Below the pieces are notes generated by a model. It was not told the origin of the DNA and ran no database searches. It saw nothing but the letters and a program-made list of their open reading frames with translations. A DNA stretch of 64,000 nucleotides from Squalus acanthias (lineage: Eukaryota). The DNA lies in contig CM059429.1 of the NCBI GenBank assembly GCA_030390025.1, positions 138,508,001 through 138,572,000 of the forward strand. The letters are read 5' to 3'. Position numbers and translations under genes: made by a program. Below, piece after piece: positions 19,751-57,821 of this stretch; the stretch's first letter is position 1, and the number at the start of each line of letters is the position of its first letter.

Positions 19751-20001
19751 GTGAATGGAGCTGATTTCAATTTAAGGATTTCCATGTTAGGATGCGGGTG
19801 CGCTACATCCTGAAGTTGCGGTCAGTTTCAGAGGGGTAATGACGGCAAATGCTGTTGGTTCGCTGTCACTACCCACCGTAAATTCCGGGCCATCCTAATT
19901 TCAGCAAAAGCAAATACCTCGGCATCTGGAAATCTGAAATAAACACAGAAAATGCTGGAAACAGCAGGTCAGGCTGTAGAGAGAATGCTGCCGGACGATT
20001 G

Positions 20002-20022
20002 TTTCAGTTTCGTTTCTCTTTC
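20002..20022 (-). promoter_or_regulatory. Multimeric ISRE/IRF-E (copy 1)
   Basis: TTTCAGTTTCGTTTCTCTTTC reads GAAA-GA-GAAA-C-GAAA-CT-GAAA on the minus strand, four GAAA cores in IRF spacing. Confidence 0.7.
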
Positions 20023-20379
20023 TGAAAGTGCGCAGTTTCTAATTCACTCACTTGGGTCAAGATGCATTGGTAAGAAAGAATACATTTCTCATATGTATTT
20101 GATCACTGGCATTTTAAACTCATATGGAGTAAATTCTGCGCCTGAAGTACAAGATGGACTCACTCATGTATATTTATGTGATTAATTACACAAACGTTAT
20201 GATAAATCCCACGATTCGATGTCCAGTCAGTAAAATTTAAATATTCAAGTAATTCTGACTTTTAAAATATCTATTTTATGATGAATGCATTAAAACCTGC
20301 CGATTCCTACAGTGAAATAGTGTATCGGGCCTTAAAGCGGGATTGTAGGTCAGTGTGGTTTAATGCGAGGTCGTGTTCA

Positions 20380-20443
20380 CAACCTGTCGAGCTTCCCTCT
20401 GCCTCGCTACAAGTGACGGAGCTGAAAGGCGGCGTTTAATAGG
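20380..20443 (+). promoter_or_regulatory. Candidate MHC class I-type SXY module (copy 1)
   Basis: CAACCT - 16 nt - CCTCGCTACAAG - TGACG - 20 nt - ATAGG. Order and spacing match HLA-A/B promoters as I recall them (CAACCT-N16-CCWGGATACTCR-TGACG-N20-ATTGG). The Y box has one mismatch. Confidence 0.6.
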
Positions 20444-20464
20444 CGCTTCAACTCAGCTCTGAGC

Positions 20465-20563
20465 AAACTCCGCAGTGAGCTCCCAGATTCTGCGTTGCTG
20501 TTTGTGCCGAGCGGAGGATTGTCCAGTGTTCCGCACCGAAACTGAACGACATTGATCAGTAAT
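20465..20563 (+). other. Candidate non-coding first exon 1a of the Ig-superfamily gene (start approximate)
   Basis: Follows the SXY-like module and ends at the donor-like AAT|GTACGT (GT at 20564-20565). Confidence 0.45.
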
Positions 20564-21019
20564 GTACGTTTGTATTCAATGTTCTTGTAACTATAATTCT
20601 AGTTGAATACAAATGTGATCTGTTTATTGATATGAAACAGTCCGTCAAGCAGACTAACTTTATTTGATTGTGAGTGGTGACGTTATGCATGTAGAACTAT
20701 ATATACAGTTAATGCGAATTAATAATATATTAAGAAAGTATTTAATTTAATTGTAAATATAACAAACATGTTAAAGGCATTTTAGAACCTCCTGAAGAAT
20801 GCTTCATGGCAGTGGAAGGCCTTATATAGAAATTACAGCCTGGAAACAGGCCCTTCGGCCCAAGCAATCCATGTTGGTGTTTCTGTCCCACAGGAGCAGT
20901 GGCCTTAATCCCTTGTGCCGGCTGTTTCTGTCGATACTGTTCCATCCCTTAATAACTTTAACCACCTCTATCAAATCCCAGTATAATCTTCACTTCTGAT
21001 GAGAACAGCCTCAATTTTA

Positions 21020-22020
21020 TGTAGTTACATAGTATTTACAGCGCAGAAACAAGCCATTCGGCCCAACTAGTCAATGCAAGTGTTTATGCTCCACACGAGC
21101 CTCCTCTCTCACTACTTCATCTAACCCCATCAACATATCTTTCTATTCCTTTCTCCCTCAGGCTTCCCCTTATATTCATCTTTGTTGTTCGCCTCAACTT
21201 GCTTGTAGTAGCGAGTTCCACATTCTAACCACTCTCTGGGTAAAGAATTATCTCCTGAATTCTTTATTGGATTTATTAGTGACTGTCTTATATTTATGGC
21301 CCCTAGTTCTGGTTGTCCCCGCAAGTGGAAACATCTTCTCTACGTCTGCCCTATCAACCCTTTTCATAATCTTAAAGACCTCTATCAGCAGGTAACATAA
21401 AAGGAAACCCCTCAATTTCCTCTTTCCTTGAGAAAAGAGCCCCAATCTGTTCAGTTTTTCCTGATAATTATAACCTCTCAGTTTTTTCAACTTTCTCCAG
21501 TGCCTCTATATACTTTTTGTAATAAGGAGACCAGAACTGTGCACAGTACTCCGTGTGGTCTAACCAAGGTTCTATATAAATTTAACATAACTTCTTTACT
21601 TTTCAATTCTATCCCTCTAGAAATAAACCCTCGTGTTTGGTTTGATTTTTTATGGCCTATTGACCTGCGTCACAACTTTTAGTGATTTAAGTATTTGTAC
21701 TCCCAGATCCCTTTGCTCCACTACCCCATTTAGATTCTGATTTCTACATAATATGTGTCCTCCTTATTTTTCTTACCAATATGTAATACCTCACACTTAA
21801 CTATGTTGAAATTCATTTGGCGATTATATGCCTATTCTGTACATTCATTAATGTCTTCCTGTAATTTGTTGCAGTCCTCCTATCCCTCCCAATTTAGAAA
21901 TTGTGTTTTTGATTCCAAAGTCTAAATCGTTAAAATAAATTGTGAACAACAGTGGTCCCAGCACTGATCCCACTTCCCACCACCTGCCACTCTGAATAGC
22001 TATCCTTTACCCTTACTCTC
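21020..22020 (-). mobile_element. CR1 LINE 3' fragment
   Basis: NYQEKLNRLGLFS..LIEVFKIMK..RTRGHKYK peptide and CR1 3' UTR. Confidence 0.8.
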
Positions 22021-22024
22021 TGCT

Positions 22025-22120
22025 AGGGTGTGGGACTAATCTGTACAGCTCTTTCGAAGAGCCGGCACAGGCACGACGGGCTGAATGGCCCCCTTCTGTG
22101 CTGTAACATTATATGATTCT
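22025..22120 (+). mobile_element. CR1 3' tail at the junction between the duplicated units
   Basis: GAAGAGCCGGCACAGGCACGACGGGCTGAATGGCC..TGTGCTGTAAC..TATGATTCT, the same tail type as 28270-28325. Confidence 0.7.
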
Positions 22121-22283
22121 AAGTATAAAAGGCACTGAAACAGGCTGAGAGTGTATCTAATGAAGGTAGGAAGAAGAAAGGAGCATATTCAATTGAGTTA
22201 GTGCATGGAAAATATAGCTTCCTGTAGGGAGACCTAGATTAGTGGAGAGAGTTCAGTCCTGTCCAAGAGGGATGAATTTTAAT

Positions 22284-23400
22284 CACATAAGAATTAGGAG
22301 CAGGAGTAGGCTATATGGCCTTTTGAACCTGCTCCGCCATTCAATAAGATCATGGCTGATCTTCGACCTCAACTCCACTTTCCCGCCCGCTCCCCATATC
22401 CCTTGATTCCCCAAGAGTCCAAAAATCCATCTATCTCAGCCTTGAATATACTCAATGACTCAGCATCCACAGCCCTTTGGGGTAGAGAATTCCAAAGATT
22501 CACAACCCTCCAGGTGAAGAAATTCTTCCTCATCTCAGTCATAAATGGCCGACCCCTATTCTGAGACTATGTCCCCTAGTTCTAGACTCTCCAGCCAGGG
22601 GAAACAACCTCTCAGCATCCACCCTGTCAATTCCCCTCAGAATCCTGTATGTTTCAATGAGACCACCTCTCATTCTTCTAAACTCCAGAGAGTATAGGCT
22701 CAATCTCTCCTCATAGGACAACCCTTTCATCCCAGGAATCAATGTAGTGAACCTTCGTTGCACCGCCTCTAAGGCATGTATGTCCTTTCCCAAATAAGGA
22801 GATCAAAACTGTGCACAATACTCTAGATGTGGTCTCACCAAAGCCCTGTACAATTGTAGTAAGACTTCCTTACTCTTGTACTCCAACCCCCTTGCAATAA
22901 AGGCCAACATGCCATTTGCCTTCCTAGTTGCTTGCTGTACCTGCATGCTAACTTTCTGTGTACGAGGACACCTAAATCTCTCTGAACACCAACATTTAAT
23001 AGTTTCTCACCATTTAAAAAATAGTCTGTTTTTCTATTCTTCCTACCAAAGTGGATAACCTCACATTTCCCCACATTATACTGCATCTGCCACCTTACTG
23101 CCCACTCACTTAACCTGTCTATATCCCTTTGCAGGCTCTTTGTGTCCTCACTGCTTACTTTCCCACCTAATTTTGTATTGTCAGCAAACTTGGATATATT
23201 GCACTCGGTCCCTTCATCTAAGTCATTTATATAGATTGTAAATAGGCCCAAGCACTGATCCATGCGGCACCCCATTAGTTACAGCCTGCTAACCGAAAAA
23301 TGACCCATTTATTTCTACTCTCTGTTTTCTGCCCATTAACCAATCCTCTATCCAAGCTAGTATATTACCCCCAACCCCATGAGCCCTTATCTTGTGTAGT
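22284..23400 (-). mobile_element. CR1 LINE inserted after the duplication (copy 2 only)
   Basis: FTIYINDLDEG..SKFADNTKLGG and YSLEFRRMRG peptides. It interrupts sequence that is contiguous in copy 1 near 11065. Confidence 0.85.
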
Positions 23401-25645
23401 AATTCTGTTGAACCCATTACTTTCAGTGAGCTGGGACATTGGAATAAACCAGTACAGAACTGAAGAGGTTTATATTGAACCCCCTTCCAAAGGGAAGTTA
23501 GTACCTCCTAGAGGTAGGAGTTACAGTACCTACAGGATAGAGTTTAAGGGTGCTGGCTTCTACCAGAAGCAGAAGCTACAATACCAGCAGCACAGAACTA
23601 AGGAACTCTATTTCTGTGCATTTAATGGTTTTTAACTTCCATCTAGAGCATCTAAGCCTTGTGCCTGCAGAGATCAGGCTTGGTTTCTATCTCTGTGTCT
23701 GCTGCGGTTTTAATATGGATATAAGAGAATCATGGTAATAATGGAAGACCTATGGATTGCAGCATGAGTTAGTAAAAAGGAGAATATAGGGTCGGTGAGG
23801 CAACTAGGTGAGGATTTCAAAATTATGATCGAGAAAATAAGGAGAAACTGTTGCCACTGGCAGGAGGGTCGGCAACCAGAGGACACAGATTTAAGATAAT
23901 TGGCAAAAAAAAGGGGCGACGAGAAGACATTTTTGTATGCAATGAGTTTTTATGATCCAGAATGCACTGCCTGTAAGGGTGGTGAAAGCAGATTAAATAG
24001 TAACTTTTAAAGGGAATTGGACATATACCTGAAGTCAGTGGAAATAAAAACCAGGAGAGATGTAAAACAGGCTGTAAAACAAATTATTTTGTTTTTTAAC
24101 CAAGGTCCTTCTGGGGTCAGATACCTGAAATCTGAACACCCATTGTGGGACACCTGAGAGCAACTAATAGTCCATAGCAACAGCACCATGTGTGCTTTTG
24201 GAAACATTTGTGTTTGTATTATGTCATTAGCACCTGTTGCACCCCATCTATTGAATCCCTAAAACTTTAGTACACTGACTTGATGTAAGAGCAGAAAATG
24301 GAAAATGTTTTTCAGAATCATCTTTTAATGTTGCTTTTCTGTAATGGTTCAGCTTTTTTATAACTATTGTATTTGGTCTTCATAAGGAGTGCTGTCTATC
24401 GGGAACTTAACGTAAAATCATTAGGTAAATACTAGTAAGGAAAGCAATTGTGGCCATCCTAGTTCATCCATACAGAAAGCTTTTAAAGTTTCCCCATTGC
24501 AGCATTCAATTTTTTCTTTAAATAATTCCAAAGTTTTCACCTCCCCTACTTTCTCTCAAAGACTATTCCATGTGTTGATGGCTCTTTGTGTGAAGAAGTA
24601 CATTTGCCTTTTAGGAGTTTGATTGCACCCTCTTTTCCTACTCTCACAGGTTAGTTTGCGGTAATTACTCACATCTATCTTTTCTTACTATTTACTATGT
24701 TATAGCCTTCAGCAAGGTCAATTCTCAGACTCTTTCAAGGTCAACAAGCCTTAGTTTATCAAGTCGTTTCTCATCTCTCAGTCCTTGAACACCAGAGAAC
24801 AACTTTGTTCTCTGAACTGTCTCCAGGGTTTTAAGGCCCCTTATATCTAAGTGACCAGGTCCAGACACAGTATGAAATATGGGGTCTGTTGAGAACACTA
24901 CATTTTGGCTCTTTCATTCAGCATTCAATTTGCTTTGCTGATTGCTGCTTAAGATTGGGAGTTCAACCCACTTACATATTTTGTCCAACTCATTTTGTAG
25001 TTCCCAACCCGTCCAAACAGATTCAATTGCCCCTCCTAGTTTGGTACCACCTGCAAATCTTACCAATTTCCCCAGCGTTTTTGAATCCAAGTCATTGATG
25101 TAAATTAGAATCAGTGGGAAGAGGGGTTCCCAAAACTCGTCCCTGGGGTACTGGTCAGTACTTCTCGCCACCTTGACATAACTCAGAACCTACTGTTCCC
25201 TACCCTTCAACCGGTTTCTTATCCATTGCCACCATTTACCCTTAATCCCCACTGTTCTAAGCTAAACAGAAGAATTTTGTCCAATGCTTTTTAGACATCT
25301 AGTCCTACCACTCTGGAATGATTTCCACTATCCTCTTGATATATTACTACCCCCAAAAAGTTAAGGACATTAGTCAGTCAGGATCTTCCTCTTTTGAATC
25401 TGTGCTGATTGCCGTTTACTATTTGTTACCGTGCAAGAAATCCTCAAGTTTACTCCTTTAGAATCAATTCCATTATTTTATCGGATGTTTTTCCTGATTG
25501 GAATGCGGGAGAAACAAGTGCTGACGGGGTGGACCAATGAGGAAAATTTAGCATGTTAAGAGCCACGAAGTGAATTTCAGGTACGGGGGTGGGGCGGATC
25601 GTGGGCCCGAATGCTGCCTGCCCATTGCAGTATTTTCTATTCAAA

Positions 25646-25666
25646 TTTCAGTTTCGTTTCTCTTTC
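25646..25666 (-). promoter_or_regulatory. Multimeric ISRE/IRF-E (copy 2)
   Basis: Identical to 20002-20022. Confidence 0.7.
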
Positions 25667-26015
25667 TGAAAGTGCGCAGTTTCTAATTCACTCACTTGGG
25701 TCAAGATGCATTGGTAAGAAAGAATAAATTTCTCATATGTATTTGACCACAGGCATATTAAACTCATATGGAGTAAATTCTGCGCCTGAAGTACAATATG
25801 GACTCACTCATGTATATTTATGTGATTAATTACACAAACATTATGATAAATTCGCTGTCCTGTCAGTAAAATTTAAATATTCAAGTAATTCTGACTTTTA
25901 AAATATCTATTTTATGATGAATGCATTCAATCCTGCCGATTCCTACAGTGAAATAGTGTATCGGGCCTTAAAGCGGGATTGTAGGTCAGTGTGGTTTAAT
26001 GCGAGGTCGTGTTCA

Positions 26016-26079
26016 CAACCTGTCGAGCTTCCCTCTGCCTCGCTACAAGTGACGGAGCTGAAAGGCGGCGTTTAATAGG
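26016..26079 (+). promoter_or_regulatory. Candidate MHC class I-type SXY module (copy 2)
   Basis: Identical to 20380-20443. Confidence 0.6.
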
Positions 26080-26099
26080 CGCTTCAACTCAGCTCTGAG

Positions 26100-26184
26100 C
26101 AAACTCCGCAGTGAGCTCCCAGCTTGTGTGTTGCTGTTTGTGCCGAGCGGAGGATTGTCCAGTGTTCCGAGATTGATCAGTAAT
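26100..26184 (+). other. Candidate non-coding first exon 1b (start approximate)
   Basis: Duplicate of exon 1a with a short internal deletion; donor-like AAT|GTACGT (GT at 26185-26186). Confidence 0.45.
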
Positions 26185-26694
26185 GTACGTTTGTATTCAA
26201 TGTTTTTCAGTAATTCTAGTTGAATACAAATGTGATCTGTTTATTGATATGAAACAGTCCGTCAAGCAGAATAACTTTATTTGATTGTGCGTGGTGACGT
26301 TATGCATATAGAACTATCTATATAGTTAATGCGAATTAATATATTTATTAAGAAACTATTTAATTGTGAATAGAAGAAACATGTTGAAGGCAATTTAGAA
26401 CCTCCCGAAGAATGCGTCATGGCAGTGGAAGGCCTTATATAGGATTTAAAGCCTGGGAACAGGCCCTTCGGCCCAAGCAATCCATGTTGGTGTTTCTGCC
26501 CCACAGGCCCAGTGGTCTTAATCCCTTGTGCAGTCTGTTTCTGCCGATTCTGTTCCATCCCTTAATAACTTTAAGACCCAAAATCAAATCCCAGTGTAAT
26601 AAACCCTTTCATAATCTTCAAGACCTCTTATCAGACCACCCCTCACCTTTTTTTCTAGAGAAAAGAGCCCCAGCCTGTTCAATCTTTCCTGATA

Positions 26695-27071
26695 CTCAGT
26701 GTGTGCAAAGAGGTGAAGCAGTGTGGTGGTGGGGGTGGAGAAGGGGCGGATCAGTGTGTGTAGGGCGAGGGGCGGGTGAGTGTGTGTGTGGGGACGGGCA
26801 GGTCAGTGTGTGGGTGGAGAGTTGGATTAGTGTGGGGGAGGAGGGGCGGGTCAGTGTGTGTGGGGGGACGGGCAGGTCAGTGTGGGTGGAGAGTTGGATT
26901 AGTGTGGGGGAGGAGGGGCGGGTCAGTGTGTGTGGGGGGACGGGCAGGTCAGTGTGTGGGTGGAGAGTTGGATTAGTGTGGGGGAGGAGGGGCAGGTCAG
27001 TGTGGGTGGAGAGTTGGATTAGTGTGGGGGAGGAGGGGCGGGTCAGTGTGTGTGGGGGGAGAGGTGCAGGC

Positions 27072-27116
<45 letters not shown>

Positions 27117-27200
27117 GGGGGGGGGGCAGGTCAAAGTGTTGGGTGGAGGGGCAGGTCAATGTGTGGTGTTGGGGTTGGTCCGTATGGGGGGTAGGGTGGG
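26695..27200. repeat. GT/G-rich compound minisatellite including (GT)n at ~27074-27113
   Basis: Repeated GTCAGTGTG(TG)GGTGGAGAGTTGGATTAGTGTGGGGGAGGAGGGGC units. Confidence 0.9.
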
Positions 27201-27659
27201 ACAGTTCAGCGCAGGACTGGCTCTCCACAAAGGGCACGGGATTGTTTGGGATTCTCACAGAAAAAGGGGGTGCTGATAATACAGTGTTATTCATGGGGGG
27301 GACTTGGGAAATCTCACCATTTCCCATATAGCCAGTTCTCCCCTGTTTGTATTTCCTCCTACCTGACAGCATCATAGTGAATCTGTGCTGTGCCCTCTCT
27401 ACTGCCTCAACATCCTTTCAGTAGTTTGGAGCTCAAAACCATACACAGTACTCCAACTGTGGTCTGATTAAGGTTTTGTATAGATTCACCATTAAACCCT
27501 GATTTCTATATACCTGTAACTATTGCCATAAAACCCAGGATTCCATTAACTTTTTTGTGGCCATATCCACTTGAGGTGCTGCTTTTAATGTCTTGTGAAC
27601 CTGAACCGTAAATCCACATCACCCAGCTTTCCCCAGTTCAAAGTAGCATGAACAGAGAG

Positions 27660-28325
27660 TTCTAGAGGTGTATATGTGAACAAATCGTTGAAGGTGGCAG
27701 GGCAGGTTGAGAAAGCGGTTAAAAAAGCTAATGGGATCCTGGGCTATATGAATAGAGGTATAGAGTACAAAAGCGTGGAAATTATGATGAACCTTTATAA
27801 AACACTGGTTCGACCTCAACTGGAGTATTGTGTCCAATTCTGGGCACCGCACTTTAGGAAAGATGTGAAAGCCTTGGAGAGGATGCAGAAAAGATTTACA
27901 AGAATGATTCCAGGAATGAGTGACTTCAGTTACGTGGATAGACTGGAGAGGCTGGGGTTGTTCTCCTTAGAGCAGAGAAGATTGAGAGGAGATTTGATCG
28001 AGGTGATCAGAATCATGAGGGGTCTAGACAGAGTAGTTAGAGAGAAACTGTTCCAATTGGCAGAAAGGTCAAGAACCAGAGGAAACCGATTTAAGGTGAT
28101 TGGCAGAAGAGGAAAAACCTTTTTACTCAGCGAGTGGTTAGGATCTGGAATGCACTGCCTGAAAGGGTGGTGGAGGCAGACTCAATCACGGCTTTCAAAA
28201 GGGAGTTGAATAAGTACCTGAAGGAAAAAAAATTGCAGGCTACGGGGAAAGGGCTGAAGTGCTCTTGCAGAGAGCCGGCACGGGCTCGAATGGCCGCCTT
28301 TTGTGCTGTAACTATTCTATGATTA
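27660..28325 (+). mobile_element. CR1 LINE 3' end inserted into an older minus-strand CR1 (~27370-28640)
   Basis: KKANGILGY..LVRPQLEYCVQFWAPH..RLRGDLIEV peptide and ATTCTATGATT tail. Confidence 0.85.
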
Positions 28326-28660
28326 TTACTTTTCTTTATGAAAATGTACCACTTCACATTTGTTGACACTGAATTCCATCTGCCACTATTTTGCACATTG
28401 CACCATCTTTTCAGTATGTTCTTGTAGCTTCCTTTGGTCCTCAGAAATATTTTCTGTGCCTCCTATTTTAATATCATCTGCAAATTTGGACAACACTCCC
28501 TCCAGTTCTATATCCGAATCATTGATGTACAAGTGAGCATAAGCGGTGGCATAACTGAACCCTGTGGGGCATCATTACCCACTTCCAACCATTTGGAAAC
28601 TGCCCTTAACTCTTACTCTCAGTTTCCTCCCTTCTAACCAGTCATTCATTCTTTTTCAGG

Positions 28661-28709
28661 ATGCCGTCACTGCGCTGTCTGGTACTTTGCTTGCTGTTTA
28701 TTCATGGTG
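28661..28709 (+). CDS. B7/butyrophilin-like Ig gene, signal-peptide exon (MPSLRCLVLCLLFIHG, phase 1)
   Basis: Acceptor TTCTTTTTCAG before 28660, donor G|GTAAGT at 28710, hydrophobic leader; phase matches the IgV exon. Confidence 0.8.
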
Positions 28710-30479
28710 GTAAGTTCTTTTCCTTCCTTTGCGGGATTTTTAAAAATAATTCATTTGAGCATTTAAAGCCCATGAATAAACTTAAATGAAGATTAAATGC
28801 AAATATCAATGTAACAGATACTGGATACATAAATAATATGAAATTTAATTTCCCCTTTGTTCAAACAAGTATCCACTTTTATTTTCTCCTTAATTGTGAC
28901 TTGATAACAAGAAGCCGAGTGTGGTGGATTTTAGAGGCGTGATTTCATACAATGTGATTTTTTTTTTAGTGGGACCAACAATCGTGGCTCGCCTGTATTG
29001 ATGAAGCTTTAATTCTTCTCAAGCAAAAAATGACCCACTTAACTGATGCATTTGATGAAATATTTGGTTATCCAACTGTGGTGTATGCAATTTTTTGTGA
29101 AAAGTTTGAGCAGGAGGTTCAAAAAGCTCAAGAACAATCCTGTCCAAACCCCCAAGCCCATGAAAGCCAAACAAAACAAACCAGCAACTAACAAGTACAA
29201 GTGCAAATAAAACAAAGTTCTTGTCTTTCATGAGCTGGATGCCATGTGCTGCAGAGCACGTGGCTCATGGGCCATAGCTTGCACGCTCTTCTTCGACAAT
29301 CTCAATATTAAATGTGCGAGCAATGCTTACACCATAATAAATTGGATTTGGGAACAGGTGCCTGAAAATATGCTGATTTCATTTGCGAGAAGTGGATATT
29401 TTAGCGGACAAAGAGTGTGGCAGGAAGTTAGCAAAATGAGTATGGAGTCTTCAATTAGGAACATGAAAGAAAATTTGTGACATAAAATACTGTGCACAAG
29501 TAAATGTGATACCACCAACCAGTGGGAGATACTATTACATACGATACCCTTGTTCCCTTTCCTTGTTCACTGCCCTTAATAAGCCACATAGGCTCCCAGT
29601 TGCTATGGTTAATGGTGCACCTCACAGTCTGGGGTTCACGTTCTGCCGTGCTGTGGTGTAAAGCTACCCCACCAGGGATGTTCTGCTGCCAATCTGGCAG
29701 GACACTGGGCAGAATGAAACGGAGAGGAAATATTCAAAGATTACCAGCTTTTTAATCAGTGCAGAAATGCAAAGAAAAGAAATGATTAAGAACGTAGATA
29801 TCTACCAATCTAAATTTATCTCTGATAAAATTTACTGCAAAGCTGCCACCATAACTTATTAGTTACTGAGTCATGGTTGAGAAGTTGAAAGTTTCTGGAG
29901 AAGGAATTGATTGATTATTGTATAAATTATTGCTCAGACTTGCTTTCCTCAACTGAAATGCTAAATATAACCAAACTTGGTTGAAACAGCACTCACAAAA
30001 TTAAAAATTCTTAAGTGGACTTAAATTACATTTAATTTAAGAAAGGAAGGGCAGAATTCAAAGATGACTTTAAAGGGTACGTTTTCCATGTGCTCTTGGC
30101 ACAGAGGCTAACCCGCCAGCAGCACATGTTGTGAAATCAGGTACATAGCCCATGATTGTCTATTCGTTTTAATGGATGGAAAATTCATGGGCTGTGCATA
30201 CACGATTTCATGGTATGTACCAGGAGCATGCAATCTCAAAATCTACACCCAAAAGAAACACATTTCCATTCAGCCCCACCAACAAAACATTAGCTAGACT
30301 AACCAATGAGTAGAAGAGCCTTTGTATAGTGTTGCAGATTTCTGTCGGACTGGATGTTATCTGCTGCTGCTTAAAATCAATCAGCAAAAACAATCTGAAT
30401 TCAGAGAAATCCATCGATTTTGGATACAAGTAATGCACCTGACAGAATAAATCTTGGATATTTGCTAACTGTCTGCTGC

Positions 30480-30600
30480 GGTATTCAGCGTTGGCTCAGG
30501 GTAACATTCTCGCCTCATTGTCACATGTCTCTAGGATTTGAGCACATATCCTAGACTGACACTTCAGTGCAGTATTGAGGAGTACTGCATTATCAGGGAT
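30480..30600 (+). mobile_element. SacSINE1-like 5' fragment
   Basis: tRNA-like head TGGCTCAG.GGT followed by CTGACACTTCAGTGCAGTATTGAGGAGTACTGCA. Confidence 0.5.
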
Positions 30601-31954
30601 CCTGGTGGCAATCTTGGATTCCGCCCAAAACAGTGGTGAAGTCGATGGAGTGGCCGCACTGCCCACCCAAAGCTGGCGTCGGAAAGCCCAAACTGGTTTC
30701 GGATTGGGTTCCATTTAAATGTCGCCAGTGAGTTGCGGGCACCAAATATTCAGTCAGATAAAAAAAGATTTCAGTGGCTTCATGTATAGCTGTCAGACTG
30801 TGCTGTTTGTGGTTTTCTAGTCTATTTTCAGCATAGGGCCAAATCACACTTGGTAGAAACCTAGGAAACAATTTGAATTTAAAATGACCTTCCTATCGTA
30901 TTCCTATTTTGTTGTTGGTTTTGTTATTGGATCTTAAAAAGTCACATTGGTCAGTGTAGAACAGCAGACCTATGCTGACAATAGACTAGAAAATAAATTA
31001 AGTGAAGATATTGGGCTGTTACAACCACAAACAGCACAGTCTGACAATATCAGAGAGGTAGGACGTCAGTTTATGATTTTGTACAGTGAGGGGCATAGCA
31101 AAGTGGAGGCCAGTTGTTTCCTCTCCGATGAATAGCCACCTAGTGCTCTTATTTCTGATCGAACAGTCAGATCCAGAAGATAAGGTCTGGGAACAATGCA
31201 TCCCACAAAGGATGAAAAATGAGGGGAGAAAATCAAAGTTAAAAAGGAGCCATGCCACTCCTTGTTGTTTGTTACACTATGGAATGTAGGGGAACCGGGT
31301 TGGCAGCCAGTTAAATTGGAGTGGGGGACTTACCCACTCTGTTCCCGCACTCTGGCCCACTGCAATTTTAAATGGCAAGTGGCAAGGACACCCGCTCAAA
31401 GCCAGCAGGGTCCTTTTTAAATAAGCAGATTGGGCTCCGATGATGTCATTGGGGCCCAGCTGCTATTTTTACCTGAGGCCTGAACAGGGGAGCAGTGGTG
31501 ACTTCCCCGCCAGGCACAGGAACAAGGGCCGGATGAGACCTGTCCTGTGAATTTGTCTTTCAAGTGGACTTTTGTGTCTTACTGAAAACCTCTAAATGTA
31601 AATTCAGGTGAAACACTGGGGTGTTACAGCTCCAGAAACAACAAATTAGACATGAAGATATTGGAAATTTACAGTAGGCTCAGATTTTTATAAAAATATT
31701 CAGGTACTTACCAACAATTTACAAAAGCTGGGAAATTCCTCGGCGCTCATCCTACTCTGTTGCTGTGCCTTCACCAAAAGTGAGGTGGAAACCAGCTCTG
31801 AGGAATTTCCCGGCCATAATCTACCCATTTTATGATACTTGTTTTGTAAACGATAGAAAAACTAATCTGGACAGAAGTTAATATTAATATATATTTATAT
31901 GAATATTTGTTGAAGGTTTTATTTGTAACTGCATTATTTCCATTCCTTATTCAG

Positions 31955-32296
31955 AAACGTTAACTGTTTCCTCTGATCAGACCACTGCTGCAGAGATTGG
32001 CCAACCTGTCACCCTCAAGTGTACATTTGACAGCGTTCGCGACAGTAATCCTACAGTGGTCTGGGAGAAGAAAGGTGTGGAGGGAACCGTGCACAAGTAC
32101 AAGGGAAATGAGCATGACTTCAGCAAACAGCATGTCAACTACACGGGAAGAACTGTAGTTGATGGAAACTCAATCAACAAAGGAGACGCAGCCCTTACAC
32201 TGAAGAATGTTAACATCTGGGATGAAGGAACTTACAAGTGCAGTGTCAGCGCTAGCAATGGATACGATGCAGCATCTGTGAATCTGAAGGTTTGGG
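31955..32296 (+). CDS. B7/butyrophilin-like Ig gene, IgV-set exon
   Basis: 342 nt, phase 1-1, CAG|...G|GTATGT. Peptide ETLTVSS..VTLKCTF..VVWEK..VHKY..YTGRT..GDAALTLKNVNIWDEGTYKCSV..VNLKVW has the canonical C-W-DxGxYxC V-set signature and the B7/BTN GDAALxL motif. Confidence 0.92.
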
Positions 32297-33399: not shown

Positions 33400-33825
33400 C
33401 GCCCACGTTCCTGACCTACTGCCCCCCCCCCCCCCCCCCCAGTCCAAGTTCCTGACCTACTACCCCCCCCCCCCCAGCCCAAGTTCCTGACCTACTACCC
33501 CCCCCCCCCCAGCCCAAGTTCCTGACCTACTACCCCCCGCGCCCCCCCCCAGCCCAAGTTCCTGACCTACTACCCCCCCCCCCAGCCCAAGTTCCTGACC
33601 TACTGCCCCCCCCGCCCCCCCCAGCCCAAGTTCCTGACCTACTGCCCCCCCCCCAGCCCAAGTTCCTGACCTACTACCCCCCCCCAGCCCAAGTTCCTGA
33701 CCTACTACCCCCCCCCAGCCCAAGTTCCTGACCTACTACCCCCCCCAGCCCAAGTTCCTGACCTACTACCCCCCCCCCAGCCCAAGTTCCTGACCTACTA
33801 CCCCCCCAGCCCAAGTTCCTGACCC
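33400..33825. repeat. ~30-bp C-rich minisatellite (CCCAGCCCAAGTTCCTGACCTACTACCCCC)n
   Basis: Directly visible; long G-tracts on the minus strand. Confidence 0.95.
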
Positions 33826-34595
33826 CTCTCCCTCTCCGATTCCCCCTCTCTCTCCGATTCCACTCTTTCTCCCCCCCTCCGATTCCCTCTTCTCCCCCCT
33901 CTCCAATTCTCTCTCTCTCCAATTCCCTCTTCTCCCCCTCTCTCCAATTCTCCCCCTCCCTCCGATTCCCTCTCCCCTCCCTCCGATTCCCTCTCTCCTC
34001 TTCCTCTGATTCCCTCTTTCTCCCCCACTCTCTCCCTCTGATTCCCTCTCTCCCCCACTCTCTCCCCCTCTGATTCTCCCTCCGGATTCCCCCTCTCTCC
34101 CTCCCGGATTCCCCCTCCGATTCCTTCTCTCTTCCTCCGATTTCCCCCTCTGTCTCCCTCCGATTTCCCCCTCTGTCCCCTCTTTCTTCCTCCGATTCCT
34201 TCTCTCTCCCCCTCTCTCCCTCCGATTCCCCCCTCTCTCTCTCCCCCCTCTCCCTCCGGATTCCCCCTCCGATTCCTTCTCTCTTCCTCCGATTTCCCCT
34301 CTGTCCCCCTCTTTCTTCCTCCGATTCCTTCTCTCTCCCCCTCTCTCCCTCCGATTCCCCTCTCTCCCTCCGATTCCCCCCTCTCTCCCCCCTCTCCCTC
34401 CGATTCCTTCTCTCTCCCTCCGATTCCTTCTCTCTCCCCCCGATTCCCCCTCTCTCCCTCCGATTCCTTCTCTCTCCCCCACTCTCTCCCTCTGATTCCC
34501 TCTCTCTTCCTCCGATTTCCTCTCTCTCCCCCCTCTCTGATTCCTTCTCTCTCCCCCTCTCCGATTCCCTCTGATTCCTTCTCTCTCCCCCACCC
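33826..34595. repeat. Polypyrimidine low-complexity repeat (CCGATTCCCTCTCTC-like)
   Basis: Directly visible. Confidence 0.9.
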
Positions 34596-35368
34596 TGAAG
34601 TGGCGAGGATCGCACCTGTCAAGGTGCTTGCCTAATTTTTGGTCCATTTAAATTAATAGAAGGAAAATCACAATGGCTCCCTCACAGGTGTGCCATTCTC
34701 CCTACCTGATTTTCTTTTCCGCACTGCGTCCAGGCAAATTTAATACCTCAGGAACAGGAAAATCTGCCAAATGGTCCTTTAAAATCAACATAAAAAGAAA
34801 AAGTGACATTTTATGGATTTATTCAAATTAGAAACGTCATGAAAAAGAAACACAAGAAAACAATGGCCGGAATTTTCATGCTGCCGTGCATGCGGGATTG
34901 GAGGCGGGTCAGGAGTAAAATTTGCAATAAATGGGAGCATGTCGGGACCCTGACATCATCCCGCCTCCTCGCGACTTGATCTCAGGCGTGTTTGCTGGCG
35001 TGGCACGGACCAGAACGGCAGAGGCGGGCAACCTAATTTAACTCATTAATACCTTGTTGTCAGACCCTTAACTGTTTTTAACCAGACCTTTTAAATTTAA
35101 CTGCATGACCAGGGGAATCGCGCAGCTTGTGAACCATGTCTGTCAACCTGAGGAGGACGTTCAGTGACCATTGATCGAGGTCATTACTGCAGAGCATGGA
35201 AAGCACAATAAATACTGCCACTGCTTACTTGCCTAAAGGAAAGGCTCTTGCTGAGTGTATTTTGAGCACAGATTTTGCAAGTCTTTTCTGCAAATTCAGA
35301 AGCCACTCTCACCGCATTACTCCTAACTATCACTGATCTCTACTTGACCTGCCATCTATTACATCAGC

Positions 35369-36575
35369 ATGGGTGCCGTTTGTACTGTCTCACCTTGGTC
35401 CTCAGAATCGGACCAGGATGAGCTCCAACACCAGCAGCAGCAACCGCAACAGCACCAACAACCTTCTCCTCAATGACCTGATGCTCCACAGGACAGAGGG
35501 TATCAGCACAGGGCTGCACCGCGCAGGAGGCGATATCCCCAATACAGGGTATACCGGCAGAGGATGAGCTTCCTCAACATGACTGAGCAGCAGTGCCAAA
35601 GGAGGCTCAGGCTATCGTGCCAGGTCATTGCAGGCATTTGCAGGTTGCTGGAACAAGACTTGCAGCCCAAAGGACCTGGTAGACGCACCTTACCAGTGGT
35701 TGACAAAGTCACCACCGCCCTCAACTCCTTTGCCTCGGGCTTCTTCCAGGGATCTGCAGCAGACATTTGTGGCATGTCGCAGTCGGCCGCCCACAGATGC
35801 TTCACCCAGGTCACCGATGCCATGTTTGACAAGTCAGCCAATTATATCAACTTTGCCACTGATGAAGCCAGAGTTACTGAGCGGGCGCTCGGCTTTGTGG
35901 CTCTGGCTGGCTTCCCACGGGTGCAGGGCGTCATCGACTGCACACGTGGCCATCAGGGCACCCCATCATCACCCAGGAGTGTTTGTAAACCGCAAGGGCT
36001 TCCACTCCGTCAATGTGCAGCTGGTCTGCAACCAAAGGTAGATTCTCATGCATGTGTGCGCCAGATTCCCTAGCAACTGTCTTGACTCTTTCGTCTTGCG
36101 CCAGGCCATCCTCCCTCAGCTCTTCACTCCACAAAATACACTTGCTGGCTGCTTGGAGATGAGGGCTATCCACTGAAGACGTGGCTCATGACACCCTTGA
36201 GGAGGCCAAGTACTGAGGCCGAGAATAAATATAATGAAAGCCACATGTCCACCCGATGTGTCATAGAGCAGACAATAGGCATGCTGAAAATGCGCTTCAG
36301 ATGCCTTGACAGATCTGGAGGAGCCCTTCAGTACACACCAGCCAGGGTCTCCAGAATCGTCGTTGTCTGCTGTGCGCTGCACAACATAGCGCAGCAGCGA
36401 GGATTAGCGCTGCATGAGGAGCAAGGCGCAGAGCGCACAGCCTCTTCGGAGGAGGAGAAAGAAGAGGAGCCTCAGCTGGAAGATGAGGAGGAGCAGGAGG
36501 AACCTGAGGTCCAGATGCCAGCAGCACCCGAGCACGTTGCTGCCGGGAGGCCAGGAATGGCCTCATTGTGGCCAG
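35369..36575 (+). pseudogene. Harbinger DDE transposase (HARBI1-like), with stop and frameshifts
   Basis: [48 protein letters not shown] and CCALHN motifs are split over frames. Confidence 0.9.
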
Positions 36576-36818
36576 ATTTACTTAAGTTCCTGCATTACAC
36601 CTATATGGCTGCCACATGCTGCGCCAGGTTCTCCACCCGTCCCCCCCGACCACAACAATACCATAAAGCATCCCTACAATGACCAAGCCATTCCTTTCAC
36701 ACTGACCCCCATTGCTGGAGGTAACGTTATGTCTCACCATTCACTGCAACTCACTAAACCACTTCTAAAGTAGGAGACATAAATGGGCATGACCTGAAAG
36801 TGGTGAAAATAAATAGTT

Positions 36819-38310
36819 TTATAAGTGACGGAACTTTAACAAAAACACTTCTTTAAACATCCATGTGCTTACCCTTGCGCTCTTCATAGATAGCATGTGC
36901 TCATGTGAGTGGCGCATTAGCTGCTCCACGCAGGTGACCATCCTTTTCATGGAAGAGCCTACAGTCGCCATCGCCTGCGACACGATGATGCTCATGTTGG
37001 AGATGGACTCCTCCATTCGCTGCACATTTTCAGATATTGCAGCCGCAAAACCTGTCAGAGCCTCCTGCACTTTTTCCTGCACCTCCAGGATCGCCCTCTT
37101 TCTCGATGGCCCCCGAGGCTGAGCGTCTGTATGCTGCTGAGCAGAGCTGGGAGCGTCCTGCGCCCTGCAGCAAGGAGTCTCTACTGCTCTCCATCTCCAT
37201 CATCTCCTCTTGCTCACTTGTGACTTGAGACACCAGGTGACAACACTACTCTGTCGCGTAGGACCCACCAAGTGCACGTATCTGCGCTGGTGCTGGGTGC
37301 GCTTGGTCTGGTGACGGTGCACCCTCAGAGGCTGGAGGCTCCTCTGAGGAGTTGTCTTCCTCTTCCACCTGGACAGTGGGGGGGGGGTGGTGGGTGGTAG
37401 GGGAGAGTAAAGAGATGATTTAGATATGATTTATTAAGAATGGCTAACGATACCATTATGCACATGAACATTCTCTGGCTGCTGATATCAGTCCCCATAT
37501 GAGTGACTGCTGTATGCCATGTGGCTGTATGAGATGTAATTCTGTCACCAGGTTGCTGCAAGGTCCCCCTCTCTCCATCTCCCACTGCCAGCTGCTCTGC
37601 AACTCCTGAGACCTCCAGGGTGGCCTCCTCTGCTGCTGTCAAAGTGGCGAAGGATGGAGGGCCACCTCTGGTTCTCTCTCTCTCTCTCCCTGTTATTGTG
37701 CGCGCGTTTCTCCTACAAGGATGGAAAGAAGAAAAGTTTGAGTGAGAGTGATGGCATGAGTGTAAGGAGTGTGTGGGTTGCATCTTTAGAAGGAGACTAT
37801 GATGGAGTGGGGTGCCAATGCCAAAGTGCCTCCTTGTGTGTTGTTAGTTGGTATGATTGCATTAGGATGAGGGTGAGTGTGAGGGGTGGTTAGTCAGAGG
37901 GGGATGTGAGTATGTAGATAGAGAGAGAGGGATGGGTGGACATGCAAAGGTATGTTGGTGTGAGGAATGATGCGCAGGAGTAGGATTGGGAAGGCAGAGT
38001 GATGGGGATGCGGTGACAGGCACAGCAGGATGAAGTTGAGTGTGGATTTGCACTCACCTTTCCTGATCTCATGAGATCACTGAAGCGCTTCCGGCACTGC
38101 ACCCAGGTCCTCCTCACCACATCTCTGCTGTTCACCTCCTCTGCAATTTGGAGTCAGGCTCTTTTTGTCTCTTGGGGAGGTCTCTTGCGTCCATCAGCAG
38201 GAAAGAGGACCTCCCTGTGTGCTCTGACTCCCTCCACAAGAATATGTAGTGAGTCATCAGAAAACCCTGGGTGCAGCCCTCTGTCTCTGTGAAGCCATCT
38301 CTGCAAGGCT
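36819..38310 (-). pseudogene. Harbinger Myb/SANT-like DNA-binding protein gene (spliced)
   Basis: NSRDVVRRTWVQCRKRFSDLMRSGK, RERERTRGGPP and a C-terminal coiled-coil-like segment. Confidence 0.8.
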
Positions 38311-38888
38311 GAGCAATAACCCGCACACCCCTAGATGAACCTTCAAATGCAATGTGGCCAAGTCTGTTTTAAATATCCCCGCTGCAAATGAGTCCATCGA
38401 TGACGTCATCGGACCCGCACTATTTAATAGAGCTGGGAAACACGCAGGCCTGCCTTAATAGGCGCCATTAATGGAAAGTCGATCTGAGGAGCAGGATGAA
38501 AAGAACGGGGTTCCGACCCGCAACAGCGACCGCCCGCACCCGACCCGTCTAGGTAATGAAAATTCCGGCCAATATGTTTACAAAGAACTTGGCTCATCAG
38601 GTCTATCTGTCAATACAATCATCTACATACCTTTATGCTGGAATTAGGAGCTTTAGATTAAATAAAGCACTCAACTCACTCCTTGTACTTCCATTGGGGC
38701 TTTTTTGCTCTGAAGTAAACACCATTACATTATTGGCTGTGCTATAGAGAATCTCTTAATTATCAGCTATTATGAAAAATGTGATGTTCTATAACGGGGT
38801 TGCATGCACATTCTTAGCTATATGGTGCCCTATCTAATGACATGCTAAAGTTCAGTGACTATAATTCATATTTTTTTCTTTGCAAAAG

Positions 38889-39170
38889 GTGCTGCTGATA
38901 TCTATATCTCATGGAAGTCTGATGAAACTGGTGCTGAAGTGCTGTCTTGCCACTCTTCAGGGTGGTACCCAGCCCCAACGATTAACTGGAGTGACGCATC
39001 TGGTAACGATTTGAACAAGGATTGTAAAGCAACCCTGACGGCAGACAACAATGGATTATTGAATGTGTCATATGACCTAAAACAACAGCATAACTCGAAG
39101 AATCAGTATATCTGCTCCATGAAGCATAAGTGGATGGCAGAGCCTAAGCGTATTCGAGTAGCATTCTCAG
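38889..39170 (+). CDS. B7/butyrophilin-like Ig gene, IgC exon
   Basis: 282 nt, phase 1-1, TTTGCAAAAG|...G|GTGAGT. VLSCHSSGWYPAPTINWSD..GLLNVSYDL..YICSMKH is the C-x-S-x-GWYP-x-P-x-I-x-W signature of B7/BTN C domains. Confidence 0.92.
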
Positions 39171-40481
39171 GTGAGTTTATTTGTGAGGTTAATGCTCATG
39201 TTAAAGGTAACTTAACAGACCATTGTAAGAGTTGCGAAAAAGAAATATATCTGTTGGGTAGAAGGAGAATCACAGCAAAACAAGATCATAGAGGCTGAGT
39301 AAGGACAAAAATAACCTGAAGGAGAAGCAGAAATATTTAAGACACAGGAAACCTATGCCTTGAAATTATGCTGCGTGATATTAGAGTGAACACGTAACAC
39401 ATTCATTTGAAATTCCTTTGTCTGGTACTTTTAATGGAGGTGTTAACCCAACAAGAGGGATTCATGAAATGTTTATTTGCAGACAGAAATTGAAAACCCA
39501 GATCGATAATTTAAGGGATAAATTGGGTAAAACTGTTACCCCATATTAGGAATTGACTGATACGTTAGAAGAATTCTTTATACAGTATCATTCTTCACAA
39601 ATAGTTGGATTAATGTCTTAAAATAGCAGCTAAAGTAAGGTTTATGCATTATGTTTTAGTATGGGAGTATTGCATTATGTGATTTCACCTACAGTTCTAG
39701 TTTTGTAAGGCTGTTACAGTGTAAGCTGTTAGTGACCAAAAGTGAAGAATCTTTTTCTTGAATGTGACCCTTCTTAATCTGCCAGTTTCTTCAGGGGTTG
39801 AAAGCTTAAATGAGGAACATATACAAAACCCAACATATTTGTTTCAATAAGAAATCAGGGGTCTACTCAAACAGGGAAGAGACTTTCTATCCATGTTAAA
39901 AATTAGCATCTTTGTCTGTACTGTACTTGAAACTATTCTTGAGGAGGAAAGTCAGGGAACGTGAGGACAGCCACTTCAGGACTAAGCACATTTAGAACCT
40001 TGTGAGTAAATCAAAATGTTCTTTTTTAAAAAGTAATTTTACATGAAAATTACAATCTGCTCAGCTGGATGAATTCATTTTGGGATATTTATACTGGTTG
40101 TAGCTCATGAGAAGCTTCAAAAGATTATTGTTAATGGTGCTGAATGATTGGTAGCTATTTTTTGCATTCCTACTAACAAAACCACATTTTGAGGAAGTGC
40201 ACATTTCAGAACTGTGTTCCACTGTTAAAACAGCAGCTAAAGAAAATGGACACTTCTGTTAATTCTTTGAACTGAGGATGAAGTAGCCTGAGGTCACACA
40301 CAAAATGGGCATCACCCACACTCTTGCATTTGCAGTAATTGTAATTATAAGATATCTTGAACAATTATATTAGATATTGCAGGACTCTAATGTGATGGCA
40401 CTGTTTTTACACATCTGCATCTCATAACACAGCGCTAACAGAAGAAATACTGATACGTCTTTATATTTCCTTTATTTTCAG

Positions 40482-40534
40482 ATGGGGGAACCATGATTCG
40501 TTTAGATGATGGAAAAAAATTGTCAGATTTATAA
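40482..40534 (+). CDS. B7/butyrophilin-like Ig gene, predicted terminal exon (DGGTMIRLDDGKKLSDL*)
   Basis: Strong acceptor TTTATATTTCCTTTATTTTCAG, phase-1 compatible, stop TAA at 40532-40534, AATAAA at 40847-40852. Confidence 0.65.
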
Positions 40535-41864
40535 ATCAAAAGCTGTGTTGCCTTTGGAGCGTGTAAATAATTTCTCCGAATAATTCTTCGATGCTCATTA
40601 TGGATTGCAAAGCTTTTCCAGAAGAAAACCTGTGGCTTATAGATCTAGGGATGGGCAATAAATGCTGGTCTTGCCAGCAACACACCCATCCATGGATGCT
40701 GCCTGACCTGCTGAGTATTTCCAGCATTTTCTGTCTTCTCAGAGGTCATCCTTTACCATCCGATCCAAGGCCTTGGAACTGTCCAGCTGCACTCCCTGTA
40801 CACTTTTCAAAAAAAAAAGTTAACATTTATAGCACCAAGCCACTTCAATAAAATAAAAAAATCCAGTCCAAAAGTTTAAATAAGAAGTGCACACTCGTTT
40901 CAGAGCGAGCTTAGGACTCAGCGCTAAGGTCGAAGTTTGCAGAGTGTGATGGTAATCGGCATTGCACGCTGACTGACGTCACACTCTCCCTATTTGCATC
41001 TCCAGAGCCAGCACTGCCATTGGCAGTACTAAGGCCCTCGCCAAAATAGCGGCCACCGAGTCCCGTGCCATTTGTTGTCCGGATTCCAGCACTAACGGGT
41101 GGTGGTAAGTAGCCCAATTTCTGGGTCTTGTAAATCTGAAGTTAATTGCATTGAACATTGCAGACACAAGCCTTTGTCTCAACACTTCAGATGAATAGAA
41201 GATGCCCTGTAACCTGTAAATCATTCTATAGAATGTTCAAAGTTTATATTTGTAATTGCCTGTAGGTGCTTCTGTAATAGGATTTTTCCATTTAGAACAC
41301 TTCGCTCTGTCAAATTTTCCCTGTCACACAACTCCTGTGATCCTGTGTAATTCCCCTAATTAAAAATACTTTGTCTGAATCGGCAAGCAGGCTCTGGCCA
41401 GCAGCTGGTGTTGTGGAGCAGATTAGTCAACCATCATCTGAAAACTTAAGATCTGCCATTTTTTCCAGTAACAGATTTCTTTTGTCTAAAATAAGGATTT
41501 AAAAATGAAAGTATAATTCACCTCTCTTTAGTTGATGCTTCACTATAACATGATTAAATTTATCCATTGAATTGTATTTTAAGGCTTTCAATAAAGTTTT
41601 TTCTTAAAGTCCTCAGGTTCTTTCAAAGGCTTGGGCTTAAGCTTGCTGTTTTTCCCAGAGCAGTGACTCTGTGAGCTGTATTTGGATTGTGCAGTCTGAG
41701 CATGAGCATTGTACCTAATTCCCCAGATACATCAGTACCCTTCAGTCAGTTGTAGTAATGGAATGTTTTTCTTAAGTTTCTAGCAGTAGATTTTCTTAAA
41801 ATAACTTTGAAAAACAAGCACAAATTTCAAAAGCTTTATTGAGGGAAGTTTTTATTGAACAGAG

Positions 41865-55316: not shown

Positions 55317-55354
55317 TGACCTGACGAAGGAGCAGCCGCTCCGAAAGCTTGTGA
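55317..55354 (+). ncRNA. Second hammerhead motif in the inverted pLTR copy
   Basis: AC-CUGACGA-A-GGAGC-AGCC-GCUCC-GAAA-GCU-U-GUGA; stem I is shortened by the inversion junction. Confidence 0.7.
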
Positions 55355-57800: not shown

Positions 57801-57821
57801 CTGGGACTCCCCCTATCGGTT

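Follow-up and report, generated by a model that had tools for sequence, protein, structure and literature searches.

The window analysed here, a stretch of 64,000 nucleotides from Squalus acanthias, contains on its plus strand a locus of five exons: a noncoding exon 1, followed by one exon each for a signal peptide, an IgV domain, an IgC domain, and a short tail. The signal-peptide exon (28660–28709) is bounded by an acceptor, tttttcag/G at 28659/28660, and a phase 1 donor, G/GTAAGT after 28709. Its ATG lies at 28661, and its peptide, MPSLRCLVLCLLFIHG, is a 16-residue hydrophobic leader in a phase-1 exon of its own, which was read from the sequence and is similar to the N-terminal sequences of the orthologues in Heptranchias and Pristiophorus. 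The IgV exon (31955–32296; Pfam V-set, 1.3e-12) and the butyrophilin-type IgC exon (38889–39170; Pfam C2-set_3, 2.4e-15) precede the last coding exon (40482–40534), which encodes a hydrophilic tail of 17 residues, D-GGTMIRLDDGKKLSDL, and the stop codon (40532–40534). This tail exon was found by tblastn with the C-terminus of an orthologue (13 of 19 residues identical); it has an acceptor, ttttcag/AT at 40481/40482, counts 17 codons, the first of them split, and is conserved in 24 of 28 orthologues. The 3′ UTR (40535–40852) carries AATAAA at 40657–40662 and 40847–40852, as well as a SINE-like stretch at ~40646–40737; position 40852, where the initial annotation ended, is the final base of the second AATAAA. 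No second IgV or IgC exon was found within the 64-kb window.

Consensus splice sites with matching phase 1 were found at all four coding exons, and the lengths of these exons, each read singly, sum to 241 codons (49+342+282+50 nt). The initial annotation had proposed a B7/butyrophilin-like protein of 241 aa with a signal peptide, an IgV and an IgC domain, built from four phase-compatible exons; both the gene structure and the family identity hold, the latter through the V-set and C2-set_3 matches and the typical B7/butyrophilin layout of IgV followed by IgC, with one exon each and phase-1 introns. Domain and homology searches were conducted exon by exon, with a stored orthologue, P0016, standing in for the whole protein where a complete chain was needed.

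The 5′ end of the gene (exon 1, signal peptide, IgV) is covered by joints in assembled read contigs. Spliced RNA-like contigs join 28709 to 31955, that is, signal peptide to IgV across a GT..AG intron, in all four runs from two studies, and an upstream noncoding exon is joined to 28660, again in four of four runs. The depth of the spliced contigs is 139–1348, versus 3–17 for intron contigs. As the contigs are spliced, the runs behave as RNA. Repeats do not explain why the runs share so many words with the window, since within it 40646–40737 alone is repeated, and the contigs are spliced. The contigs also identify the upstream exon, given that the one joined to 28660 carries 30 letters corresponding to 20534–20563, preceded by a further 30–40 letters corresponding to 20494–20533. 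The verified part of exon 1 thus spans 20494–20563 (plus strand, four of four runs), with the donor GTACGT at 20564, and its true start probably lies slightly upstream of 20494. The exon chain of the initial annotation is therefore seen directly from exon 1 through the signal peptide to IgV; the joint from IgC to the tail (39170 to 40482) is predicted by homology to 28 aligned orthologues.

Self-comparison revealed that the promoter and exon 1 block (copy A, 20002–20985) has a tandem duplicate, copy B, at 25646–26598 on the plus strand. The two copies are 100% identical over 20292–20486, a 195-bp core that includes a TGACG motif; copy B has one ISRE-like match versus two in copy A and lacks ~15–17 nt of exon 1. 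The letters 20534–20563 are absent from copy B, and no splice joint of its own was found for it among the RNA-like contigs of the four runs. Exon 1 is hence transcribed from the upstream copy of this tandemly duplicated block of ~1 kb. This is the block from which transcription had been proposed, and the joint between the exon ending at 20563 and 28660 bears that out.

Near the 5′ end of copy A lies a putative tandem pair of ISRE/IRF-E-like elements on the minus strand (20001–20022), GAAACTGAAAC and GAAAGAGAAAC. Matches to GAAANNGAAAC number four in the window versus 0.87 expected, a count reached in one of 100 shuffles, and three of the four fall in the two promoter copies; the presence of an ISRE-like element upstream of the gene, as initially annotated, is thereby upheld. 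The first base verified as transcribed, 20494, lies ~470 nt downstream of the GAAANNGAAAC(T) pair at 20001–20022, and it should be noted that the contigs do not fix the start site. Closer to exon 1, on the plus strand, are an X1-X2-like sequence (20402–20420; CCTCGCTACAAG followed by TGACGGA), of which only the CRE half-site TGACG fits the strict consensus, and TTTAATAGG (20435–20443), which had been described as Y-like. The latter precedes the verified part of exon 1 by ~50 nt, and from this placement with respect to the exon 1 contigs we infer the role of a TATA-like box.

To which member of the B7/butyrophilin family the gene corresponds was addressed at the level of single domains. Against solved structures, human VTCN1 (4gos_A) is the best match of the IgV exon (5.1e-18, 68.1 bits), followed by CD276 (1.3e-13, 54 bits), PD-L1 (2.8e-11), and BTN2A1 (2e-10), and IgV is thus closest to VTCN1 among the B7 members. 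The IgC exon is best matched by BTNL8 (7.1e-9) and BTN3A3 (1.1e-8). A family profile gives VTCN1 76.7 bits over 102 residues, and ranks CD276 and BTNL8 above the IgV-only chain of VTCN1; because only the IgV of VTCN1 is in the PDB, two-domain chains outscore it by length alone. A Foldseek search with the model of P0016 returned PD-L1 and the ectodomains of BTN3A and BTN2A1 (E 1e-15 to 1e-17), with BTN3A2 as the closest ectodomain fold (TM-score 0.79), and the ESM Atlas neighbours are generic butyrophilin-like and PD-L1-like proteins, which do not separate orthology. On the human map, the neighbours of VTCN1 are TRIM45 and MAN1A2.

These IgC, profile, and ESM Atlas matches, together with the butyrophilin-like names that NCBI gives some of the orthologues, would suit a lineage-specific butyrophilin-like or CD276-like B7 member rather than an orthologue of VTCN1. 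We consider such an origin unlikely, given the lead of VTCN1 over CD276 when IgV is compared alone, the bias of the profile ranking toward two-domain chains, the plain name VTCN1 in nine species, and the absence of a B30.2 (PRY/SPRY) domain or an exon encoding one, the protein ending 17 residues after IgC. The assignment to VTCN1 is drawn from the best IgV match and the automatic NCBI names.

The gene is widely represented in sharks and rays. NCBI holds models of 222–248 aa in 19 named species, under the names VTCN1, VTCN1-like, or butyrophilin-like; XP_067896839.1 from Heterodontus francisci, named VTCN1, has 241 aa and 68% identity over IgV. Searching with a profile gave 17 clusters, each of 228–248 aa, and the ten that were looked up comprise 29 members of 222–248 aa, the one exception being a model of 282 aa, which is extended at its N-terminus and ends in the same tail; no other orthologue exceeds 248 aa. 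Five members derive from Logan contigs of 991–1458 nt, four of them with a complete coding sequence, while the fifth, P0182 (222 aa), stops early in the tail; such contigs must be spliced mRNA. Searches for a holocephalan or bony-fish VTCN1, with the profile and with a region-limited search (three candidates, two matches), reached elasmobranchs only. The locus had initially been put forward as an undescribed system, which does not stand, the gene being already annotated automatically as VTCN1 in many elasmobranch genomes. A literature search, outside which Flajnik et al. (2012) fell, found no publication on an anchorless VTCN1 (B7-H4) of sharks or rays. What is new is the reading of the gene as anchorless; the gene models themselves are in public annotation.

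A type I transmembrane anchor after IgC was not found in S. acanthias, where the tail exon is hydrophilic, and none of the 28 aligned orthologues has a hydrophobic anchor, their 19-residue windows beyond residue 30 reaching a Kyte-Doolittle mean of at most 1.27. The anchorless state noted in the initial annotation is thus a conserved form and not a misprediction. Across the 28 aligned sequences, column conservation is 0.65 for the tail, compared with 0.66 for IgV and 0.64 for IgC, and 24 of the 28 end in [DE]L. In the AlphaFold model of P0016 (pLDDT 84.9), residues 228–233 of the tail form a strand, at moderate confidence (pLDDT of 70, 67, and 48 in blocks of 10 residues). Given that sharks and rays alike have kept the tail, and that in the model it adds a beta-strand beyond the final strand of IgC, it is probably a functional part of the protein and not the scar of a truncation.

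A conserved tail can also be taken to mean that the protein is not freely secreted but, through the tail (…IRxDDGxxSxDL), is retained in the ER or attached to a partner in the membrane, making it a lumenal or surface-associated subunit like those of butyrophilin heteromers. In keeping with this, the tail matches the Ig domains in conservation, keeps its [DE]L end, is modelled as an added strand, and as a pure linker remnant would not have stayed conserved between sharks and rays. The classical ER retention pattern is K/H-D-E-L. The conserved [DE]L prompted us to consider retention of this type, which was kept only as a minor rival, since the last four residues (LSDL, SPDL, SSDL, PSDL) do not appear to fit that motif. 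The tail moreover has no cysteine for covalent pairing, and no partner is known, so that holding or tethering appears distinctly unlikely.

The promoter had been proposed to be of the MHC class I type, with the gene coregulated with MHC class I through an ISRE and an SXY enhanceosome (RFX/CREB/NF-Y with NLRC5). In class I-type promoters the S box sits ~16 bp upstream of X. The S-X1-X2-Y-like module annotated at 20380–20443 bears a loose resemblance only, and what speaks for such coregulation is the tandem ISRE-like pair, the TGACG at 20414, which follows a loosely X1-like sequence ~50–90 nt upstream of verified transcribed bases, and the perfect identity of the core containing it between the promoter copies; human BTN3A genes are also driven by NLRC5, according to PMC7753138. 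Ludigs et al. (PMC4374748) place Y at 20–22 bp from X, with the spacing critical, and report that NLRC5 specificity is set by the S box. At the present locus no RFX half-site lies beside the X2-like TGACG, the sole match to the consensus RGYAAC/GTTRCY within 19950–20600 being at 20494, inside the transcribed exon. No CCAAT occurs within 19950–20600, where the sole ATTGG, at 20066, is 348 nt upstream of the TGACG, and neither CCAAT nor ATTGG occurs within 340 nt downstream of it, so that the Y box expected 20–22 bp from X is absent. As the ISRE-like sites are also ~380 nt from the X-like sequence, and identity between recent duplicates is no evidence of constraint, the class I-type SXY promoter is not borne out, and coregulation with MHC class I by this route is very unlikely.

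Between 39171 and 64000 the plus strand has 25 hydrophobic 19-residue windows. The three inspected as transmembrane exons (47028, 47042, and 48552) either have no usable phase-1 acceptor or follow directly on an in-frame stop; the strongest, 48552, has such a stop before it and could be spliced only through a phase-2 acceptor, and is therefore not an exon. An additional anchored isoform, in which IgC would be spliced alternatively to a transmembrane exon further downstream, is highly improbable even though the contig joints cover the 5′ end of the gene, contigs drop rare variants (any minor anchored isoform included), and hydrophobic windows exist downstream, since the inspected windows fail, many of the others sit among transposon and retrovirus-like ORFs, and no anchor is present in any of the 29 members that the ten examined clusters comprise, nor in any listed isoform.

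We favor the view, with a probability of roughly 0.7, that the elasmobranch gene at this locus is orthologous, or co-orthologous, to VTCN1 (B7-H4), and that its anchorless product is likely a soluble ligand or decoy. Lacking any hydrophobic end of the transmembrane or GPI type, the product is most likely secreted: upon cleavage of its signal peptide, it would pass into the secretory pathway as a soluble B7 ectodomain of two domains. By homology, its most likely role would be that of a soluble ligand, or a decoy, that engages a receptor of the B7-H4 type on lymphocytes, and any interferon control of the gene would act through the upstream ISRE-like sites. A more far-reaching proposal, which we hold only tentatively and regard as rather doubtful, is that B7-H4 of sharks and rays is an obligate secreted factor, that its C-terminal strand and acidic tail (…IRxDDGxxSxDL) dock onto a partner or receptor, and that the tandem ISRE-like sites make the gene interferon-inducible; if true, the protein would circulate and, much like a cytokine, restrain T cells or act on them as a decoy.

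B7 family proteins are generally membrane-anchored, and under this far-reaching proposal B7-H4 of sharks and rays would be the only B7 orthologue known to lack a membrane form. Here, the B7-H4 orthologue of a whole vertebrate subclass would be confined to a soluble form, with its tail constrained in sharks as well as rays. It is also a test case for the workings of checkpoint ligands in early jawed vertebrates. No receptor of B7-H4 is known, and as a natural and stable soluble form of B7-H4 that carries a conserved additional element, the shark protein could be a useful probe for it.

Compared with known systems, the shark gene has, like the MHC class I promoter, ISRE-like repeats and a CRE half-site ahead of its start region, and differs in its lack of an RFX half-site by the CRE-like site and of a correctly spaced Y box, as well as in the distance of its ISRE-like sites from the X-like sequence, to which the ISRE is adjacent in class I promoters. 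With the butyrophilins (BTN3A, BTN2A1, BTNL8) it has in common the C2-set_3 type of IgC and the ectodomain fold, whereas its protein has neither a transmembrane segment nor a B30.2/SPRY exon, and its IgV is closer to VTCN1. The likeness to human and mammalian VTCN1 (B7-H4, B7x) extends over the signal peptide, the single IgV and IgC domains with one exon per domain, and an IgV that is the best solved match to the shark exon; in contrast, human VTCN1 is anchored and the shark gene ends in its hydrophilic tail. According to a review, human B7-H4 is membrane-anchored and also has a soluble serum form, sB7H4; the germline gene of sharks and rays encodes only the soluble form.

Four coding exons lie on the + strand of the window, which contains zero N, and their consensus splice sites, phase 1 throughout and summed lengths of 241 codons agree with the four phase-compatible exons and 241-aa protein proposed in the initial annotation. 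The signal-peptide exon, whose product is MPSLRCLVLCLLFIHG, has an acceptor (tttttcag/G) at 28659/28660, its ATG at 28661 and a donor (G/GTAAGT) after 28709; as it is preceded by an acceptor, this exon is therefore internal. It is followed by the IgV exon (31955-32296, +), the IgC exon (38889-39170, +) and a last coding exon (40482-40534, +) encoding D-GGTMIRLDDGKKLSDL and then a stop, and the final base of an AATAAA falls at 40852, the end coordinate first given for the gene.

Database searches were run with one exon each, and the stored orthologue P0016 was used for all whole-protein steps. The IgV exon matches the Pfam V-set (1.3e-12) and the IgC exon the butyrophilin-type C2-set_3 (2.4e-15); no second IgV or IgC exon was found within the 64-kb window. 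Against solved structures, the best match of the IgV exon is human VTCN1/B7-H4 (4gos_A, 5.1e-18), followed by CD276 (1.3e-13), PD-L1 (2.8e-11) and BTN2A1 (2e-10), and the IgC exon ranks BTNL8 (7.1e-9) first and BTN3A3 (1.1e-8) next. A HMMER search with the IgV exon returned 2167 proteins at E ≤ 0.001, and P0016 (241 aa, 68% identity) was the only match above 40% identity among the best 150 of these. Ten clusters were obtained from a search seeded with P0016 and 17 from a search with the family alignment, all of 228-248 aa. Ten clusters were looked up, and their 29 members measure 222-248 aa, with the single exception of a 282-aa model, which carries a spurious N-terminal extension and has the same C-terminus as the others. 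Fully named species number 19 (ten sharks and nine batoids), and the orthologues are named VTCN1 or VTCN1-like in the databases, or butyrophilin-like in some rays; among them, the Pristiophorus japonicus orthologue comes nearest to the gene in the window (75% in IgV, 68% in IgC), which points to a squalomorph shark as the probable source of the sequence. The gene is most likely elasmobranch VTCN1 and has already been automatically annotated; in the human genome VTCN1 is adjoined by TRIM45.

Mobula birostris and Rhinoraja longicauda each have several distinct accessions, which suggests local duplication of the anchorless gene in some rays. In batoid orthologues the canonical second IgV cysteine (position 112 of P0016; orthologue alignments A2 and A3) is missing, and additional cysteines stand close to the first (…CTFECDGxC…), a pattern that suggests a rearranged disulfide.

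Sequencing runs were searched with 38889-40852; eight of the 13 runs listed were guessed to be RNA, with 0.33-0.68 of the sampled words, and the contigs of four runs (X1-X4; two studies, two organism codes) were aligned to 26000-31999, leaving out part of a minisatellite at 26730-27140 as repeat. All four runs contain the joint 28709>31955 (GT..AG). In each of them, 28660 is also joined to a piece from upstream, which aligns at 26130/26140-26169 and then has 30 further letters. These letters correspond to 20534-20563 in copy A, the upstream one of two promoter/exon 1 blocks, and are partly absent from its downstream duplicate, copy B, so that the non-coding exon 1 is that of copy A. It ends at 20563 with the donor GTACGT, giving an intron 1 of ~8.1 kb. 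Spliced contigs reach depths of 139-1348 against 3-17 for intron contigs, indicating that the runs behave as RNA and that the gene is well expressed in X1-X4. The joints covered by the contigs are exon 1 to signal peptide and signal peptide to IgV, and the step from IgC to the tail exon is placed by homology to the orthologues. Contigs end 60-70 nt upstream of the exon 1 donor in all four; such ends cannot define a start site, and their position fits a start shortly after TTTAATAGG at 20435-20443.

The block at 20002-20985 is repeated at 25646-26598, and the two copies, in tandem and 5.6 kb apart, are 100% identical over a core of ~195 bp (20292-20486), with identity falling to 86-89% further downstream, where both run into transposon. 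Only the exon 1 of copy A is seen in the RNA-like contigs, while copy B retains the identical core and the donor site; no separate copy B joint was present among the contigs listed for X1-X4, which drop rare variants.

Upstream of the gene, an ISRE and an MHC class I-type SXY module had been proposed, of which the former finds a counterpart in the sequence. Across the 64 kb there are four occurrences of the ISRE-like string GAAANNGAAAC, compared with 0.87 expected, and 1/100 shuffles gave as many as four; two occurrences stand in tandem at 20001-20022 (copy A), one lies in copy B and one elsewhere. The tandem pair precedes the first verified transcribed base by ~470 nt, and a near-ISRE, GAAACTGAAC, is located on the + strand at 20536-20550, inside the 5′ UTR, in a 17-nt stretch of exon 1 unique to copy A. 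The SXY module is unsupported: a CRE half-site TGACG is present within 20402-20420, but in 19950-20600 no RFX half-site lies beside it (the sole one is at 20494, within the exon), and there is no CCAAT, the sole ATTGG being at 20066. The strings scanned were RFX and NF-Y consensus forms. In Ludigs et al. (PMC4374748), SXY spacing is described as critical, the S box lying no more than 16 bp from X and the Y box 20-22 bp from it, and NLRC5 specificity as set by the S box. The ISRE-like element may be regarded as a fair lead, and a reading as an MHC-class-I-type promoter beyond the upstream ISRE-like pair is not supported.

The remaining window consists mostly of transposon and retrovirus-like ORFs. 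A LINE reverse-transcriptase fragment lies a short way upstream of copy A, and shortly after copy B, in intron 1, the minisatellite at 26730-27140 is G/T-rich with units of 24-28 nt. Also in intron 1, contigs of very high depth (summed, up to ~37,000) pile up on a LINE-derived stretch (27600-28400) in each of the four runs, presumably through transcription of many genomic copies. At 35564-36682 (+) and 37890-38135 (-), intron 2 contains a Harbinger/PIF-type transposase relic (DDE_Tnp_4, 1.2e-13) and, neighboring it, an ORF that is Myb/SANT-like by eye and has no Pfam match. An identical 19-residue window at 52872 and 61845, 8,973 nt apart, flanks ORFs at 56620-60847 (-) resembling gag, protease, reverse transcriptase and integrase; this arrangement fits an LTR retrovirus-like element, and the ORFs at 53269-55403 suggest a second element inserted in it. 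The ORFs of 270-440 aa seen in several frames at 5983-7311 and 33460-34650 are spurious products of long low-complexity arrays.

The C-terminus was assessed in an alignment of 28 orthologue sequences. None of these has a hydrophobic anchor, as no 19-residue window past residue 30 exceeds a Kyte-Doolittle mean of 1.27, in line with the missing anchor originally noted. The motif [IVL][RHQS]x[DN][DNV][GA] with a terminal [DE]L is found in 24 of the 28 (the pattern is missing from P0158, P0165, P0166 and P0181), and mean column conservation of the tail (0.65) equals that of IgV (0.66) and IgC (0.64) and is above that of the signal peptide (0.49). By tblastn, the orthologue tail maps to 40475-40531 with 13/19 residues identical. 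Five family members derive from Logan contigs of 991-1458 nt, which must be spliced mRNA because the same exons cover ~12 kb in the window; the coding sequence is complete in four of them and breaks off early in the tail in P0182 (222 aa).

Targeted literature searches returned no paper on elasmobranch VTCN1/B7-H4 or on its missing anchor; the gene may be mentioned in the 2012 account of B7 evolution by Flajnik et al. What was taken for an undescribed system is, as a gene, already annotated as VTCN1, whereas its anchorless form is apparently undescribed. In an AlphaFold2 model of P0016 based on the 28-sequence alignment (pLDDT 84.9, pTM 0.76), the tail is placed, at moderate confidence, as a strand (residues 228-233) that follows the final strand of IgC. 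The ectodomains of PD-L1, BTN3A, BTN2A1 and B7-H6 match in Foldseek (E 1e-15 to 1e-17). The lack of an anchor, together with the conserved tail, is genuine and has apparently gone undescribed.
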